A stretch of DNA of 63,309 nucleotides, the filler included, from Choristocarpus tenellus KU-1152 (lineage: Eukaryota; Protista; Phaeophyceae), in the NCBI GenBank assembly GCA_964200185.2. It is 13 parts of 13 records of this genome, joined end to end, with 100 filler letters (N's around TTAATTAATTAA, not from the genome) between each part and the next. Parts side by side here need not be neighbours in the genome. Positions count along the whole stretch, not along the records: positions 29,704 to 36,565 come from CAXNAD020007194.1; 12 more parts are not named here. One strand, written 5' to 3'. The notes beneath the pieces are model-generated. The model saw only the letters and a list, made by a program, of their open reading frames with translations. It was not told where the DNA came from and made no database searches. This document shows, piece by piece, positions 1 to 36,859 of the stretch (within the stretch, counting starts at the first letter, position 1; each line of letters opens with the position of its first letter). Both the position numbers and the translations under genes were made by a program.

Positions 1-340
1 GTTCCCCACGCGCGCATACTGTTCGCGCCAGTCAAAGCACGGGAAGAAATACTCGCGCTACTCGCCTGTAACATAAGTAGCGATTTAATATTTGAAATTT
101 CAAACAAATGCACTATCAAGTGTGTAAATAATGAATACTACATATTTTTCACCTGCACATACTGACGCTTTCATTCCACAGGTATATGGATATGTTCTTT
201 ATGAGGTCGAAACAATAAAGTCCAGAGATGATTGCAAAGAGCACTATCTATACGGATACATACAACAACACAACCTTCAACTTTTTGAACACATTCTAAA
301 ATTTTCACATGGAGTGGTCAAATGAATCTGATAGTTGAAC

Positions 341-640
341 TAGTACAAAATGTGTTGGACAAGGTCCGGACATGCCAGAAAAAATGTTAGACTGGCCGGT
401 GGACATGGTCCTGGCATGCAAGAGAATGGTAGACCCTGTCCACCCTGCGAACACCTACTGGTACAATATCAAGTGGGCATGGTCCGGACATGTTAGAGAA
501 ATATTAGATCCGGCCTGGCTGATGGACATGGAGTGGTACAATACCCAGTGGGCATGGTCTGGACATGTTCAAGATTGTCAGATCTGGTCTGGCTGGTGGA
601 TTTGGAAGAGATCAATATATCTAGTGGACATGGACTGGGG
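341..640. repeat. Degenerate ~75-bp direct repeats
   Basis: tggtacaata..cagtgggcatggtc(c/t)ggacatgtt recurs near 459 and 534, with a weaker copy near 341. Confidence 0.6.
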
Positions 641-29703: not shown

Positions 29704-30060
29704 CGCCTCAGCTGCAGCAGCACCTACACCTTTGCTGGTGGATGAGTTGGTGAGGTGGGAGGTTGCCTGTACCTCTGCGAAGGTGACGTCCAGCAGAAGA
29801 CCTTTGTCCCTTGTAGGGAGCAGTTCCAGCATCTGCTAGTGCCCCTGCGTGAAACACCAGATCCATGCGAAGATTCCGGTCCACAGTGAAATGGCTACCG
29901 TCCTCCATAGTGCGAGGGGTGCCCATTATCATACCCTCTAAGATTTTAGAGGTATGTCAGAAGAAAAGCCAAGAACCCCTGAAAAAGTAACAACATTATA
30001 CTTTATTAGTTGATTTAACTCCCCAACCATATCATTACAATAATACATAATAATAATATA
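29704..30060 (-). mobile_element. CRE-like fragment (29704-29927) abutted by the 3' tail of another CRE-like copy (~29927-30060)
   Basis: MEDGSHFTVDRNLRMDLVFHAGALADAGTAPY matches 13050-13250. The stretch 29927-29995 resembles the 3' end at 59648-59745. Confidence 0.75.
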
Positions 30061-30796
30061 ACAATTGGTGTTGGTAATATGATGTATGACGAGTTGAGGA
30101 GGGTGTACATAGGAGATTGGAGATCTGTTAGAGTGTTCTGCAGGGTTATTTGATTCTTTCTGTCAGTTCACAATTGAGAGGACAAAATTATGAATTTAGA
30201 GTTATTTTGTCAACACTTTATTCTGAATCACTACAAAAATAATATATATTTTCCTATTTCAGTCTACAAGAGATGTACTTGAAATTGTTCCTTGAGACCT
30301 CAAACCGAAAAAATTACAGAGTTTGAACTAAAACTATTCAACGATTTGGAACTAATATTTGATGGGCAGTTGATCACTACAGTTACGCATAAATATTTAT
30401 ATTATCATTCTTTAGATGTATTGTCTATTCTACCTGAGTTTGCAATTTAAACATTACAGTGTATAAAAAAGATACATAAAACAAAACTCTACATTATTCT
30501 ACATCACTGATGAAATCTTTCCGGCATTGAAAACAAATGTATTTTTCTTGGGTTCGGTATGATCCTATGAATAGCTATGGTTAGAAATGTAGCGTCAAAT
30601 TTATATCATACCGTCATATCGTATGAAGGAGGATTTAATGAGGAAACACTGACTTATTTCAAGTGGGAATGGCTTGTTTCAAGCGGAGTGGATTTATTTC
30701 ATGACGGCTCATCTTGATAGTTCCCCTACCTCTTAAAACACTTACAGGGTTCTAGGTACAACAAAGAGATTGAGAAGATATTTGGGGTATGATAGC

Positions 30797-33700
30797 ATGT
30801 CGTCCATCGCGCGTGTGGAGGGAGGTGCTATGCAAGCACATACTTCCAAGAAGCGCCGTATGCCATCGCATTGGATTTCGGAAGACAGGACTTTTAGTGA
30901 CAAAGAGGGTGAGAAGGGTATTGACAGATATACTAAGAATGATATCGAGGACAACGGCTTGAAGGAAGAAAATGCAGTGAATGTGCAACAGCGTAGGGGG
31001 CCTCAATTCCCCAATCGACCCACCGGCATTGGGGTTTGTAAAAGGGACTTCTTGTCTCCTGAGCGCCATCCACGTGACGTGATTCCATACAACCAGGATA
31101 TGGTTGTCAACGGTGGAATCGAGGTAGTGCATTCTGCAAATCAATACGAATGCACGAATGGTCCACATGCGAGTGATACTATTCTACGGACACCGGATCC
31201 CGAACTTCCGTCTGTTGATCGTCCCGCAAACACAGAGGCATCACCAGTTCCTCTTTCACAAGGTGTGGAGGCATCCCGAAATGTGAAGTTGGAGAGAGAG
31301 AGCAAAAATGTCAGTTTCCCATCGACAGAGTCTATTGAGGCACAGGCAACACCTCGATCTCAGCGAAGGGGAGCTGCAGCAGCACCTGCAGTGACTGCAG
31401 CAGTCAGACTTACAGGGCAGGGGGGTGCACCTATGTCTCCTCCATCTGAAACTGGGTACGGGGCAATTCGTGTGGAAGACTTACGATGCCCTGGAGGTAC
31501 GACGTGCGACTCAATCCATGAAAGTATATGCAGGACACCAGCAGGACTTTCGACCGCGGTACGGACGGCATGCCACTTCTGGAGGATGGTGGTGGATCAG
31601 GTGTGTTTGTGTGTGTCTGTGTTTGTGTGTGTTCAATTTTTTTATCGTGGATTTGCTCATCCAATAAATATATTGTTAAAGTGTTGCGAGAACATATTGC
31701 CCTTAAAGTGGAAGGCTCCCTTTTGCTAATCTTTAGCATTGTTTCTGCATAACCCATCAACTGCAAGTTATGGCTAACGGTATACTACATATCATCATTG
31801 TTCGAGTCAACCTTAGCTACCTCTGCATTGCTCTTGAACTCCTCCTTTCCTGTTAGGCACAGGGGAAATCTAAAGTATCTCCCGTTTTTGATCATGTGCC
31901 TAGACTGCATGACCTTTGCATGAAGTGGGGAGCAGTTCCATTATGCCTTGCCATTGGGTACGGCAACATGCGGACATCGGATGTGGGCACTGTCCTCGAA
32001 GCTTTTGCTCTGGCCCACCGGACTCCATACATGGGCGATGACTATGATGGAGCTTACATTGGTGGTCCAACCATTGTCAACTATGTTGGATCCTTGCTGA
32101 CCTATCGACAGAAAAAGTATCAACAGCCCTCTGACACTGATGCAATGTGTATGGAGGCATTGCAAGGGACCAAGTGGAAGCTCAAGGGTGCACATCCCTT
32201 CCTTAAGAGGATTTGGGAGGCAGTCAATGTGCGAGTCAAGATCTTTCAGGAGGATCAAGGACTCGGGAAAGAGAAGGCTTCACTCAAAGCAGACATCCTC
32301 GATCTCAAGGATTTTGAACGAGTGCAGATGCTGACAGATGAGAAGATGCGTCAAGCAAGAGAGAACAAAGATGTTCGTACATTCATCATTCATCTTACTG
32401 AGGGGATGGTGCAGGAACTCCTCTACTACGGAGGCAGCAGGGCTTTGGCAGAAATTGTGAACATTAGGGTCTCAGACTTCACAGTGTTTCCAGATGGGAA
32501 GTACTATTACTTCAATGGACATGTAAGTATTATGTCTTCATTCTCCTTGGTTTCTGGGTATGGATGTTGATTTGATTTTTGTTGTAGACCTCTGACTGCC
32601 TATTGCATTTCATTGTTGTTCTTGCCAATTGGCTGTGATACTGTTGCCGTAGAAAGTAGAAATGTGTACTGCTATGCAGGTATCACTTCTTATTTCATCT
32701 TACCGCTGCCATCTGTCCATTTCTTCAGGGGGAGTACTTTTATGAGCTCACACCATCATGTAGTGGGAAGTACACCATAGGAAGTAACACCAACACCAAC
32801 GAGCATCTGAAGGATAGGCAAAGATGCCTTGTCACAGGGCAACGCTTTACACATCTCTTCAACATATTGATGTCCCATCGACCTCGGGGTGCAGTGGATC
32901 GCCTCTTCCTTAAGGCAGCACGTGACTCAAATAGAAAAACTCTCACATTTGACGAGGATTCTCCCCCATGGTTCACCTGCCAACCCTTGGGTAAGACTTC
33001 TTCGCGCATCAAGTGCATTGGGCATTATGCTGAGGAATTGGGGATTCAGGGACACTTCAGCAACACCTCAGTGCGGCATCTGGTGCAAACCAAATTGACT
33101 CTCGGCAAAGTCCCCACTGCGTTGACTACCATTGTTGTGGGCCACATGTCCGCGAAAGGTCACATATATGTTAAACCGGAGGGGCGCCACAGTGCAGACA
33201 ACACTATTATCAACAATGCCATCTATATGGAAGGGATGCGTAGCCCTGTAATTCGTGAACTGGTAGCATTGATACTTGCTGGACAGGGTTCATGGGACTC
33301 TCTGCAAGGCAATAAACGCATCCTCAACATGAACAAGAGCAAGTCTGGCTTCCCTGCCACGTGGAGGAGCTTTTCCGCCAGCAGGACCAATAGTCAGCAT
33401 GTACACCAAAACCAGCAAACTGTTGCTGTTCCATCATCCCCTTTTCACACTGTTGCCCCACCTAATTGGCTCGAGGCTTGTAGTGATGATGAAGACTTGG
33501 AACTCTCTTACCGGAGCAAAGGGGTGGGTTCTTCGACCCCTAGTGCTAGAAGCAATGACCTCTTCAGCCAATTGGGAAGCCCACCTGCATTCACCCGCCT
33601 AGGACCCGAGGAAGAAGACCATAATGTCTCGCCATCCTGGGGTACGGCAATAGCAAGGAGGGATGGCCTGGGGTGGAACAACAGGGTGGCACCGTGTGGT

Positions 33701-33805
33701 CCTGAGGTAGCGTTAACTGTGTGCCCTTCATGCAGGTACTACGTTGCCCTGTCATATCCTCACTCCACTGCACATACCTGCCCAAGGTGTGGGGGAATGA
33801 TTTGA
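30797..33805 (+). CDS. Intact three-exon tyrosine recombinase, Crypton/DUF3504-like, ~848 aa (exons 30797-31600, 31857-32522, 32729-33805)
   Basis: Two phase-0 GT-AG introns join three open frames with no stop. Motifs: LEAFALAHRT..DGAY..PTIVNYVGSL (core-binding region), GSRALAEIVNIRVSDF (first catalytic R), LFLKA..WFTCQPLGK, FSNTSVRH (HxxR box), VGHMSAKGHIY (H and Y), and C-terminal CPSC-x15-CPRC. Confidence 0.8.
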
Positions 33806-36545
33806 GTGATTTGATTGGTTAGATTGAATGCTTTCAGCAATTTATGTTGATCCACAATAGTCTCTACCACGCACTGCCACTAGAGGCATGTGTGATGAGT
33901 AGGGTGGTTAGAAGGCATGTTTTCATTGTGCTGTTTGATATTTTCCATGTTTAATAGGCTGATGTGTGGCCCACCTCTTCAATGGTCTAAATTATATATT
34001 TTTAATAACCCGTGATCCTCTTCATGCCAGGCACAACTTTTTCTTTCACCTTTTTAGTATATGCCTTCATAAGAATGCTGAAGACTAATTTGAATTTATT
34101 GTGACTTAATGGCAGGGCTTGTTTGCTACCATAATTTCTTAGGGCTGCCCCAACTACGGATGGCTCATGTGGAATTTTTTGGACTGCTGTGATTTCATTA
34201 TACATGGGGTACTTCTGTAGTATCTACTGCAATGATATCAACTTCAGAGCGTCCTAAGCATAGGGTCTTTGTACAGAAAAGTGTTTTGGGGACTTTTCAG
34301 CACCTCCTGAAATGTACATCCCAGGCATACCCCATGTTTTCCATGGTAGGGCTATTCATCTGCAGACTGTCATATGTTTGGTCAATTATTTTGTCTTCCC
34401 AAGATCATTATTACTCTTACCCTCTCGAAAAGGTGGAGGGTGTAGTATGATGCTCAAGGAACGGTAGGGTTCTAGCCAATAATACTTGATTGAAGGGACC
34501 ACATGAACTTTTTTTAGGGGTGTATAGCGTGATTGGTACACCTGGTCTGCGGGCAGGCAGTAAGACCGTTTTTTTTTTTTTTGTAGGAGACAGAAAACAT
34601 ATATTGGGGTAGAGGGTCAGTGTGATATTTTATCTTGTGCAATTGTAATACTTCATACTTCGTGGAGTGTGTGGTTGGAAATTTTGTAAAGAGGTGTAGA
34701 GGGATGGTTAAGTCTAGGTGGCAAGGTCACAATGGCTGTTCCGTCAGGACTAGGAGTTGATGTGAGTGTGTACTGGGCGTGTATTCTGTGGGAATTAGTG
34801 CTTCTGGATGGAGTGCGATATTGGAGTACAAAAAACAATTGGGACAGAATATTTTACCTGTTCTATGGTTTGACCGAGGAAGTGAGCACACCTGATACAT
34901 GATGGAAGTGCTTGTTTGTATGTTTGTATTTGCTTATGTATATGGTGGATGTAGCTCTACTAATTTGGGGAGACGAAATTCATGTTGGGGTAGGAGGCAG
35001 TGTGAGTTATGTTTGGATGCTTTAGTGCATATATCTGAAATATTTTTGGTTTGGAGTGTAGTATGCTGTTAGAGTTGCGTTATAGTACAGGACAGGTAGA
35101 CATAGACCAGTACCTGAACACATAACACAAAATGTAGAAGTAGTGTTGTGAATTGCAATGATTTAGTGGAGTCGATTTGATCATTCAAATAATAATTGAG
35201 ATTGTATTACCTTTTTTCATCGTGCTTATGTGCACTGTGCGATATATGTTCCTTGTGGTGCTTAGCACTTCCTCATTGTCGCCTAAACAGCCACACTCAT
35301 GCTTCGATTCATTTTGTTCATGGACTCGTTTCAATACAGCCAAAAATATTATCGTAAGGGTTGTTTCTCAACACAGAGGTCTGGCAGAGATGCAAAAGGG
35401 ATATGTATGAAGAATATGAACGTGAGACCATGTGTGTAACTTTATTGAAGAGTTGTTTGATTGTAGGTTGGGGACTGCATTTTATTGAGGTGTTATATTA
35501 CTGTAAATCGGTTTCACTATTATTACTGATCCATGAAGAGGAGTGATGAACGTTATACAGCACACATGGGTTCATTTTCTTACTTCTTAATGTAGATCCC
35601 AACCATTGGGAGATGGTACCCATTTCTTCTATAAAAAATTGCTCTGTGATGTACTAAATATCAGGATACGAGTGTGAGACTCTTGGACTCCTTTTTTTTA
35701 TGTGCCACATTCCACAGCAACATACAGATATATACAAATGCACACACAGATATATATATATATATATATATAATATCAGAGTCATAGGGTGGAGAAATGT
35801 CACTCCCTGACTACCGCAGCACAACTCACACTGCCACAACCTCTCATAGCTAAACACCAAACAGAAGCAGTGCAGGTGGTACCCCACTGACTTCTGGCAC
35901 CTCCTCCTCCTCCTGTCTCTCGTGTGGACATCCTCGCTCCCTAGGCACCACCCATGATATAGGTAAAAAATAATATTTTTGTTTCTCCGCCTAAATGGAA
36001 CGAGTTCATGTAGAGACGAAAGTACGGATTTTCAGGAAATCCTTCGCATTGTACTTACTTCCTACTGTGAGTATTATTTAATTCGAGCATCGGTTCAGTT
36101 TTGCAGGCATAAATTATGGAAAAGGAAAATGTTTGGAACTGGACAAGAGGATAGTACTTCGGTTAATTAGTAGTGCTGCATCTATATCGCAAAAGTGGCA
36201 ACAATATTAAACCCTGGATCACTGATGGTGTGTACATTTGCATTCAGGTTGTTGGCAGTGTGTGGTTGGATCAATCCAATTTATCCCACTGTGTGATGAT
36301 TGCTGTTGTTGATCAAAATACATTAGTATGACCTACCAACAGGTAGCCAAAGGAAGGGAACTACTTGCGTGTGTATCTCATGGGGTTAAAGAAAAAAAGA
36401 GAAAGAGTACCTATAAAAATCGCCTGCTTTGATCCTTAGGAGGTGCACTTATGTCGCACCAGAACAAGGTGTATTATTCATATCAAGTAAATATGCAGTG
36501 TGCTTCAAGATCCTGTATCGACTGTGAATCCTAGAGGGTGTATTT

Positions 36546-36859
36546 GGGTCGAAGTATCTTGGGGGNNNNNNNNNNNNNNNNNNNNNNNNNNNNNNNNNNN
36601 NNNNNNNNNTTAATTAATTAANNNNNNNNNNNNNNNNNNNNNNNNNNNNNNNNNNNNNNNNNNNNGGGGGGGGGGGGGGGGGTGGGGGGGGGGGGGGGGG
36701 GGGGGGGGGTACACCAGGGTATCCTTTCGGGCCCTGACCAGGAGAAGTGAACTTACAGTATGCATCCGACGCATGCAACCAAATCACCTAAAAAATACAA
36801 CAGAAAAAATTGGGCCCCGAATGGACAGTCATCACTCCCACACCCAGATACTTTGAGCC
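36546..36859 (+). mobile_element. MITE family B ends on both sides of an assembly spacer (36546-36565; 36666-36859)
   Basis: gggtcgaagtatcttggggg before the gap; poly-G, body and cagatactttgagcc after it. The two pieces may not belong to the same copy. Confidence 0.7.

Follow-up and report, generated by a model that had tools for sequence, protein, structure and literature searches.

A transcribed and spliced gene with a predicted tyrosine-recombinase fold and an altered active-site signature in the brown alga Choristocarpus tenellus

We analysed a tyrosine recombinase gene at positions 30797-33805 of a 63,309-nucleotide stretch of DNA (the window: 13 joined parts, filler included) from the brown alga Choristocarpus tenellus KU-1152. 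The range studied, 29704-36565, is the whole of the 6862-bp contig CAXNAD020007194.1 of assembly GCA_964200185.2. We found that the locus is a genuine nuclear gene with three exons that is transcribed and spliced, and that the catalytic domain of its product, as judged from a predicted model, has the tyrosine-recombinase fold. The protein is a member of a small and highly divergent family missed by Pfam, which forms an unnamed recombinase lineage with an altered active-site signature. We see an even chance that this is an old, low-copy recombinase gene of a new, divergent lineage of Crypton type, the Cryptons being DNA transposons reportedly described by Goodwin in 2003.

Three plus-strand open reading frame (ORF) pieces join in frame to encode 848 amino acids (aa), counted from the first in-frame ATG at 30797 (Table 1). 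The initial annotation had proposed such a frame of ~848 aa, assembled from three fragments through two phase-0 GT-AG introns, and this proposal is borne out by the sequence, the transcripts and an identical public protein. The public protein, CAM9620771.1 (837 aa, 'unnamed protein product', hereafter P0001), represents the same model with its start at the second ATG, 30830, and all residue numbers (Arg452, Tyr645 and so on) follow P0001. The exons were used as separate queries, and the complete protein was then taken from the public entry; the joined exon codons were used only for the identity check and for substitution rates. A chance ORF or an annotation artefact is ruled out by the spliced transcripts and by a conserved paralogue, both described below.

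Three public runs of one study (X1, X2 and X3) contain the locus. Contigs from X1 and X3 follow the genomic order and contain the introns, so that these runs behave as DNA, while X2 is presumably an RNA run, judging by the spliced joints in its contigs. Coverage in X2 is limited to 30713-35171, with a depth of zero outside this region and across intron 2. A 3111-nt X2 contig with a depth of 62.6 joins 32522 to 32729, skipping 206 nt bounded by GT..AG, and continues to 35171. The removal of intron 1 is recorded in a 57-nt X2 contig (depth 35.4) composed of 31572-31600 (29 nt) and 31857-31884 (28 nt). The pieces of this contig were aligned as 26 + 1 + 30 letters, with an ambiguous 'AG' and a GT-repeat at 31598-31636, an arrangement that fits the predicted junction. 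Both of the proposed junctions, 31600/31857 and 32522/32729, were therefore seen in spliced form in X2 contigs.

Some further features of the transcript are of note. A weaker X2 contig (depth 11.6) keeps intron 1, and intron 2 was seen without retention. The start of intron 1 is occupied by a GT-rich, (GT)n-like microsatellite (31601-31632, detected by Tandem Repeats Finder). Upstream, an out-of-frame ATG at 30789, 8 nt before 30797, opens an ORF of ~59 codons (30789-30965), which runs into the beginning of the coding sequence and could influence whether 30797 or 30830 is chosen as start codon. The 3' untranslated region (UTR) between 34500 and 35100 is GT-rich, with a G-over-C skew of 0.43-0.47 and a T13 run near 34567, and contains no ORF or family match. 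At the 3' end of the transcript, a 40-nt segment (35140-35179) recurs, with 4 mismatches, in other contigs of each of the three runs; it is a short dispersed repeat, at which the X2 transcript contig stops.

The encoded protein has five parts: a disordered tail at the N-terminus, followed by a helical core-binding-like domain, the catalytic domain, a disordered linker and a zinc ribbon at the C-terminus. Exon 1 encodes the N-terminal tail, which is poorly conserved and probably disordered, a KKRR stretch and a Cys/His motif. This motif (C220, C226, H230 and C248) precedes the core-binding-like domain, is kept in the paralogue (aa 212-250, ~31463-31579), and may form a small zinc-binding module; it has no Pfam match. 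Exon 2 contributes the helical domain and the first part of the catalytic domain, in which Arg452 lies, and exon 3 contributes the remainder of the catalytic domain (to aa 678, 33325), the disordered linker and the C-terminal zinc ribbon. Pfam returned nothing for exon 1 or exon 2.

To describe the catalytic domain, we used an AlphaFold2 (AF2) model of P0001 residues 408-690, which was built on a 17-row alignment and has a predicted local distance difference test score (pLDDT) of 69.6 and a predicted template modelling score (pTM) of 0.70. An earlier AF2 model (461 aa, 9 rows, pLDDT 38.9) was not used. With VIA-align, the domain superposes on archaeal XerA (4a8e) with a Z of 12.1-12.2 across 167 residues (3.6 Å), on XerH with a Z of 11.3-11.5, and on Cre (10.5-11.4), an S. 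aureus integrase (10.9), XerD (9.7-9.8) and Flp (9.6). The DUF3504 protein QRICH1 (9hjt_H) scored a Z of 9.0, and Ndc10 scored 6.2-6.8. When 48,161 representative chains were compared exhaustively and independently of Foldseek, ranks 1-29 were all of the recombinase/topoisomerase-IB fold (Z 12.1 to 5.9), with the first unrelated chain at a Z of 4.1; the tyrosine recombinase fold that the initial annotation had read from the order of motifs is confirmed by this ranking. Foldseek listed only recombinases and type IB topoisomerases from the PDB, at E-values of 0.014 or worse and none at 0.001 or below. The best shape match in the ESM-Atlas was a eukaryotic DUF3504/Phage_integrase cluster, with a template modelling (TM) score of 0.52, and the top matches in BFVD were phage integrases, none of them phaeoviral. 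The protein had also been described as closer to DUF3504, which the model does not support: the domain is at least as near Xer and Cre (Z 10.5-12.2) as it is to QRICH1, so that the modelled structure gives no specific affinity to DUF3504 over Xer or Cre.

A closer examination of the predicted active site reveals that most of the residues used by tyrosine recombinases are in place. Arg452, Arg595 and Tyr645 are invariant or nearly so in the family alignments, and the series R, K, R, H, Y is kept although overall identity within the family is only ~25%, which argues that the chemistry is under selection. Tyr645 is the candidate nucleophile, a role suggested by its conservation and by its place in the last aligned helix of the model (model residues 228-242), which the XerA and XerD alignments cover. 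The nearer Tyr626 (GHIY) is not kept in the paralogue. Because Arg452, Lys493, Arg595, His618 and Tyr645 are retained, we infer that the recombinase would cleave and religate DNA by way of a 3'-phosphotyrosyl intermediate, like Cre and Xer.

Every motif named initially was found, as GGSRALAE, PPWFTCQPLG, NTSVRH and VGH, with Y645 as the conserved tyrosine, yet the set is not the canonical one it had been taken for. A threonine stands at the His of H-x-x-R, and ~26 residues separate GH from the tyrosine instead of ~8. The distance from His618 to the tyrosine is 27 residues, compared with ~9 in Cre, in Xer and in P0007, a canonical relative that has N-H-S-V-R in the columns where the family has N-T-S-x-R. 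The family signature is thus N-T-S-x-R combined with a loop of ~20-26 residues between GH and the tyrosine.

Sequence searches place the protein outside the described families, as had been anticipated, in that none of them assigned it to any. The Pfam model DUF3504 (PF12012) matched exon 3 at aa 19-90 with 15.5 bits against a gathering cut-off of 29.7, so that the proposed DUF3504 membership rests below threshold. Across the family, four of the 13 members match this model weakly (13.9-16.0 bits, E 0.013-0.056), and only over profile positions 90-151. P0001 has no match to Phage_integrase (PF00589), and the best family member reached an E-value of 9.8e-4, under the cut-off of 27.1 bits. Sequence and profile searches of the PDB gave nothing significant: XerH and XerA appeared at E-values of 0.4 and 1.2, and the other rows were unrelated. 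A word-index protein search with exon 3 found nothing, and an Rfam scan of the contig was likewise empty.

Using phmmer with exon 3 against 1.84 billion representative proteins, we matched seven proteins, namely P0001 itself (100%), the paralogue P0002 (48%) and five short, unnamed proteins from metagenomes or run assemblies. One of these five is P0007 (E 8e-4 to exon 3), which passes the Phage_integrase model with 38.3 bits against 27.1. Aligned to P0007 with hhalign, the 13-member family profile gave a probability of 95.9% and an E-value of 5.7e-9, spanning RLFL, WF..QP.G and NTS.R to GH. The link between the P0001 family and PF00589 is therefore transitive only, since it runs through P0007. 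A word-index search with residues 258-690 of P0001, covering 5.8 billion clusters, returned the two Choristocarpus proteins and nothing else, and no full-length relative was found there in any other annotated genome. Viral contigs searched with the family alignment held no relative; one metagenome locus was found. P0032, a 42-aa protein on a phage-like contig that had been placed in the cluster of a relative, was judged a spurious cluster assignment. Among language-model neighbours, exon 3 lies near Phage_integrase and DUF3504 clusters, and those of exon 2 include QRICH1/DUF3504, DUF3435 and Phage_int_SAM_1 clusters (0.94-0.96). A tree built from the catalytic domain sets the two algal proteins on a long branch of their own, next to two groups of metagenomic proteins.

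The paralogue, P0002, is an 879-aa C. tenellus protein encoded on a 7280-bp contig (L002). Its introns lie at positions homologous to those of P0001, the flanking residues being TVTTQ/VVAIE compared with VVDQ/AQGK at one and RNRF/GEEF compared with FNGH/GEYF at the other (the slash marks the junction). The two proteins are 47% identical, with 45% identity across P0001 residues 212-678, and in their tails essentially nothing can be aligned but the terminal zinc ribbon and one short motif, APPNWL. Over the core, the nonsynonymous rate (dN) is 0.49, synonymous sites are saturated and third-position identity is 0.37. The core-binding-like domain alone is 48% identical, with a dN of 0.47 and a synonymous rate (dS) of 2.3, and the tails have a dN above 1.1 (1.13 for the N-terminal tail). 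The saturation of synonymous sites indicates that the duplication is old, and purifying selection acting on both structured domains has preserved the two copies intact.

Two observations bear on further copies. X1 and X3 contain a separate 6294-nt contig that differs from 31894-31931 at 3 sites and whose flanks are absent from L002. At 32403-32442, a 40-nt unitig is covered about twice as deeply (41 compared with 16-20) and breaks contigs. Together, these short matches hint at a third family member that may be closer than P0002.

The recombinase gene is the only recognisable gene on its 6.9-kb contig. Pfam scans of the exons and of flanking ORFs of at least 60 aa on this contig detected no reverse transcriptase (RT), RNase H or methyltransferase, which upholds the earlier remark that the lack of RT and RNase H nearby argues against DIRS elements; nor does the contig carry a viral core gene.

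These properties are best compared with those of Cryptons. For other stramenopiles, CryptonS elements have been described from oomycetes and from a diatom, and Cryptons typically have very few copies (Kojima and Jurka 2011, PMC3212892). Like CryptonS and CryptonA/DUF3504, the locus is a nuclear gene for a tyrosine recombinase only, with introns and with neither RT nor terminal inverted repeats (TIRs) seen; it also shares the very low copy number, the stramenopile host and a C-terminal extension past the catalytic domain. The weak Pfam matches to DUF3504 and the best Atlas shape match, a DUF3504/Phage_integrase cluster, are further points in common. Having one recognisable gene, introns, and at least two diverged paralogues on short, repeat-bounded contigs, the locus would suit a Crypton-type origin. 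The lack of a full-length relative in the other annotated genomes of the cluster collection, and the near-identical units of metagenomic relatives in differing flanks, also favour it. For this reading we infer mobility: the recombinase would be the gene of an old, low-copy DNA element that would excise as a circle, and the circle would reintegrate at short homologous sites.

The locus differs from Cryptons in having no significant sequence link to any named Crypton protein, in its N-T-S-x-R in place of H-x-x-R, in the long insert before the tyrosine, and in that we found neither element ends nor short direct repeats at the termini, and no second copy of near-identical sequence. Cryptons are also essentially unreported in brown algae. 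A curated Ectocarpus transposable element library contains many Ngaro and PAT-like families and no Crypton (PMC12477816), and the annotation of a kelp lists 111 bp of Crypton (PMC12595068).

Several results weigh against a mobile, catalytic element of Crypton type. No Pfam model scored above threshold for the recombinase protein, the alignment behind the AF2 model was shallow (17 rows), and only two of the five models folded. His-II of H-x-x-R is replaced by Thr592, with N-T-S-x-R invariant in 13 of 13 members, and the insert between GH and the tyrosine was modelled with low confidence, which together leave catalysis unassured. Cryptons have short (4-6 bp) terminal direct repeats, TATGG for most CryptonS, and no TIRs; on the contig we found no convincing terminal repeats or recombination sites, the direct repeats being short, AT-rich or at chance level, with inverted repeats not exceeding chance either, and TATGG occurs 9 times on the plus strand, about the chance expectation. 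A comparison of flanks revealed no non-coding ends shared between this locus and the P0002 contig. The DNA runs X1 and X3 hold one colinear copy at 90% identity or more, at a single-copy depth like that of neighbouring unique contigs, and no hallmark of transposition was found at the locus or in these runs. The two copies, each single and intact after an ancient divergence, share their intron positions, and with the ordinary long 3' UTR this also resembles the state of host genes.

It is a real possibility, if short of a probable one, that the gene belongs to a host-retained (domesticated) and still catalytic recombinase family that has lost its mobility and of which two or three paralogues are kept for a host task, possibly programmed rearrangement, the resolution of DNA structures or the handling of integrated viral or mobile DNA. 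The single copy at single-copy depth, the intactness of both paralogues after synonymous saturation (core dN 0.49), the introns shared in position and phase, the steady spliced expression with its long 3' UTR, and the lineage-specific tails and zinc ribbon added to the core all speak for it. The locus also resembles the domesticated Crypton derivatives, namely the DUF3504 genes (ZMYM2-4, QRICH1, KCTD1 and KIAA1958) and yeast Ndc10/Gcr1, in its introns, expression and single copy, and in a recombinase fold embedded in a longer protein that also has disordered segments and modules for binding zinc. However, the known domesticated derivatives (DUF3504 genes, Gcr1 and Ndc10) have lost catalytic residues, the DUF3504 genes having lost Tyr and Arg-II (PMC3212892), whereas R, K, R, H and Y are kept here. 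No conserved orthologue was found in other taxa in the cluster collection searched, and a full-length one would be expected in other annotated genomes for a gene with saturated dS. The metagenomic relatives, moreover, look multi-copy: grouped at 90% identity or more, their clusters contain 62 and 87 variants, and the contigs concerned do not exceed ~3 kb. To our knowledge, eukaryotic recombinases of the tyrosine fold with a full active site come only from mobile elements, viruses and plasmids, which also counts against host retention. A Choristocarpus host family of catalytically competent recombinases with a Crypton-like origin, carrying out programmed site-specific rearrangement or acting on integrated viral or mobile DNA, seems to us doubtful.

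The same domesticated genes provide the model for a protein that is not catalytic at all, a DNA-binding or scaffold protein like ZMYM, QRICH1 or Ndc10 in which the fold is kept for binding DNA or a partner. The threonine that replaces the H-x-x-R histidine in the whole family would suit such a protein, as would the unusual and poorly modelled spacing from GH to the tyrosine, the structural matches to QRICH1 (Z 9.0) and Ndc10 (Z 6.2-6.8), and the weak DUF3504 matches. We nevertheless consider it unlikely, as hardly any family member departs from the two arginines, the lysine, His-III or the tyrosine at an overall identity of ~25%, and the DUF3504 genes have lost two of these, Tyr and Arg-II (PMC3212892). 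Among enzymes, Xer, Cre and the phage integrases (PF00589) are the best structural matches and have the same order of active-site residues, but identity to them is 12-16%, PF00589 is unmatched by P0001, Thr occupies His-II, and the gene here is eukaryotic and spliced, with long tails and a zinc ribbon. Finally, the recombinase could derive from a DIRS, Ngaro or PAT-type retrotransposon or from an integrated phaeovirus, the sources from which this enzyme type is known in brown algae, all of which share its host group and its enzyme fold; Ectocarpus has many Ngaro and PAT-like families (PMC12477816), and phaeovirus integrases, at ~800 aa (PMC13236599), are near this protein in length. This origin is highly improbable and is largely refuted: the contig is without RT, RNase H, methyltransferase and viral core gene or other viral neighbours, two spliceosomal introns are removed from the transcript, phmmer found no DIRS-like or phaeoviral match in 1.84 billion proteins, viral contigs held no relative, and the BFVD fold matches are phage integrases.

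Beyond the gene, the contig is bounded by repeats. At its left end, a minus-strand ORF starts at 29932 with MIMGTPRTMEDGSHFTVDRNLRMDLVFHAGALAD and runs off the contig; a second copy of 134 aa lies at 30-434 (+) of L002. Over 223 nt (L002 30-251) these copies share 86.5% identity, the similarity begins at the ATG, and their orientation relative to the recombinase gene is opposite. The ORF has no Pfam or PDB match and probably belongs to a dispersed repeat at which the assembly breaks. At the right end, the last 24 nt (36542-36565) match L002 7247-7270 in the same orientation (91.7%), 10 nt from the right end of L002, and both paralogue contigs may stop at the same repeat family.

The metagenomic relatives include intronless proteins of 668 aa (the P0012 type), encoded by a 2.4-kb unit whose copies in different samples share 98.8-99.7% identity but have differing flanks. 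The unit ends in poly(A) of variable length (10 compared with 21 A), and by this sequence feature the units look like retroposed copies. The N-terminus of P0012 has a CCHC zinc knuckle (C-x2-C-x4-H-x4-C), and an imperfect palindrome of 89-103 nt precedes its ORF. On a 1.9-kb metagenome contig (L004) encoding a 443-aa relative, a perfect 65-nt inverted repeat flanks the gene (89-153 and 1864-1928), and a further contig (L009) starts with TTTTTGAAAA and ends with TTTTTCAAAAA. These inverted repeats and contig ends could be real inverted termini or an artefact of assembly.

Table 1. Features of the recombinase locus (window coordinates) and of related loci (coordinates on the contig named)
Feature	Position	Strand	Details
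Exon 1, coding part	30797-31600	+	268 codons; ORF track and sequence
Intron 1	31601-31856	+	256 nt, GT..AG, phase 0; sequence and X2 contig
Exon 2	31857-32522	+	222 codons
Intron 2	32523-32728	+	206 nt, GT..AG, phase 0; sequence and X2 contig
Exon 3	32729-33805	+	358 codons plus stop
Transcribed region	30713-35171	+	84-nt 5' leader, three exons, ~1.37-kb 3' UTR; extent of X2 contigs
Helical core-binding-like domain	31857-32306	+	aa 258-407; exon 2; resembles recombinase core-binding domain
Catalytic domain, predicted tyrosine-recombinase fold	32307-33325	+	P0001 aa 408-678; split by intron 2; AF2 model and structural alignment
Arg452 codon (Arg-I, GGSRALAE)	32439-32441	+	present in all family members covering the column
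Lys493 codon (candidate beta-hairpin Lys)	32768-32770	+	kept in at least 90% of the family; loop with pLDDT <50
Thr592-Arg595 codons (T-S-V-R; Arg595 = Arg-II)	33065-33076	+	family alignment
His618 codon (His-III, VGH)	33143-33145	+	invariant
Tyr645 codon (candidate nucleophile, NNAIYMEG)	33224-33226	+	invariant in family alignment (Y251 of the aligned segment); 27 residues past His618
C-terminal zinc ribbon, C-x2-C ... C-x2-C (C811, C814, C830, C833)	33722-33790	+	weak zinc-ribbon Pfam matches in both paralogues
Repeated ORF start, off left contig end	29704-29932	-	flanking repeat, outside the recombinase gene
P0002 exons	L002 2976-3677, 4208-4888, 5325-6581		two GT..AG phase-0 introns
P0012-type units	L003 76-2486; L005 246-2645; L006 1-2311

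Tyrosine-recombinase genes outside retrotransposons and viruses are essentially undescribed in brown algae, and as an old, low-copy gene of Crypton type this locus would extend Crypton-like recombinases to the Phaeophyceae. Its family was missed by sequence profiles and recognised by structure alone, which suggests that counts of such elements in the genomes of protists and algae are too low. An invariant threonine at His-II and the long insert before the candidate nucleophile make the family a natural active-site variant. Should the gene prove immobile yet catalytic, C. tenellus would be a rare eukaryote that retains an active site-specific recombinase for its own use, and a catalytic host family would be the first catalytic domesticated recombinase of the tyrosine fold in a eukaryotic nucleus, with an unusual R-K-T-R-H-Y site.

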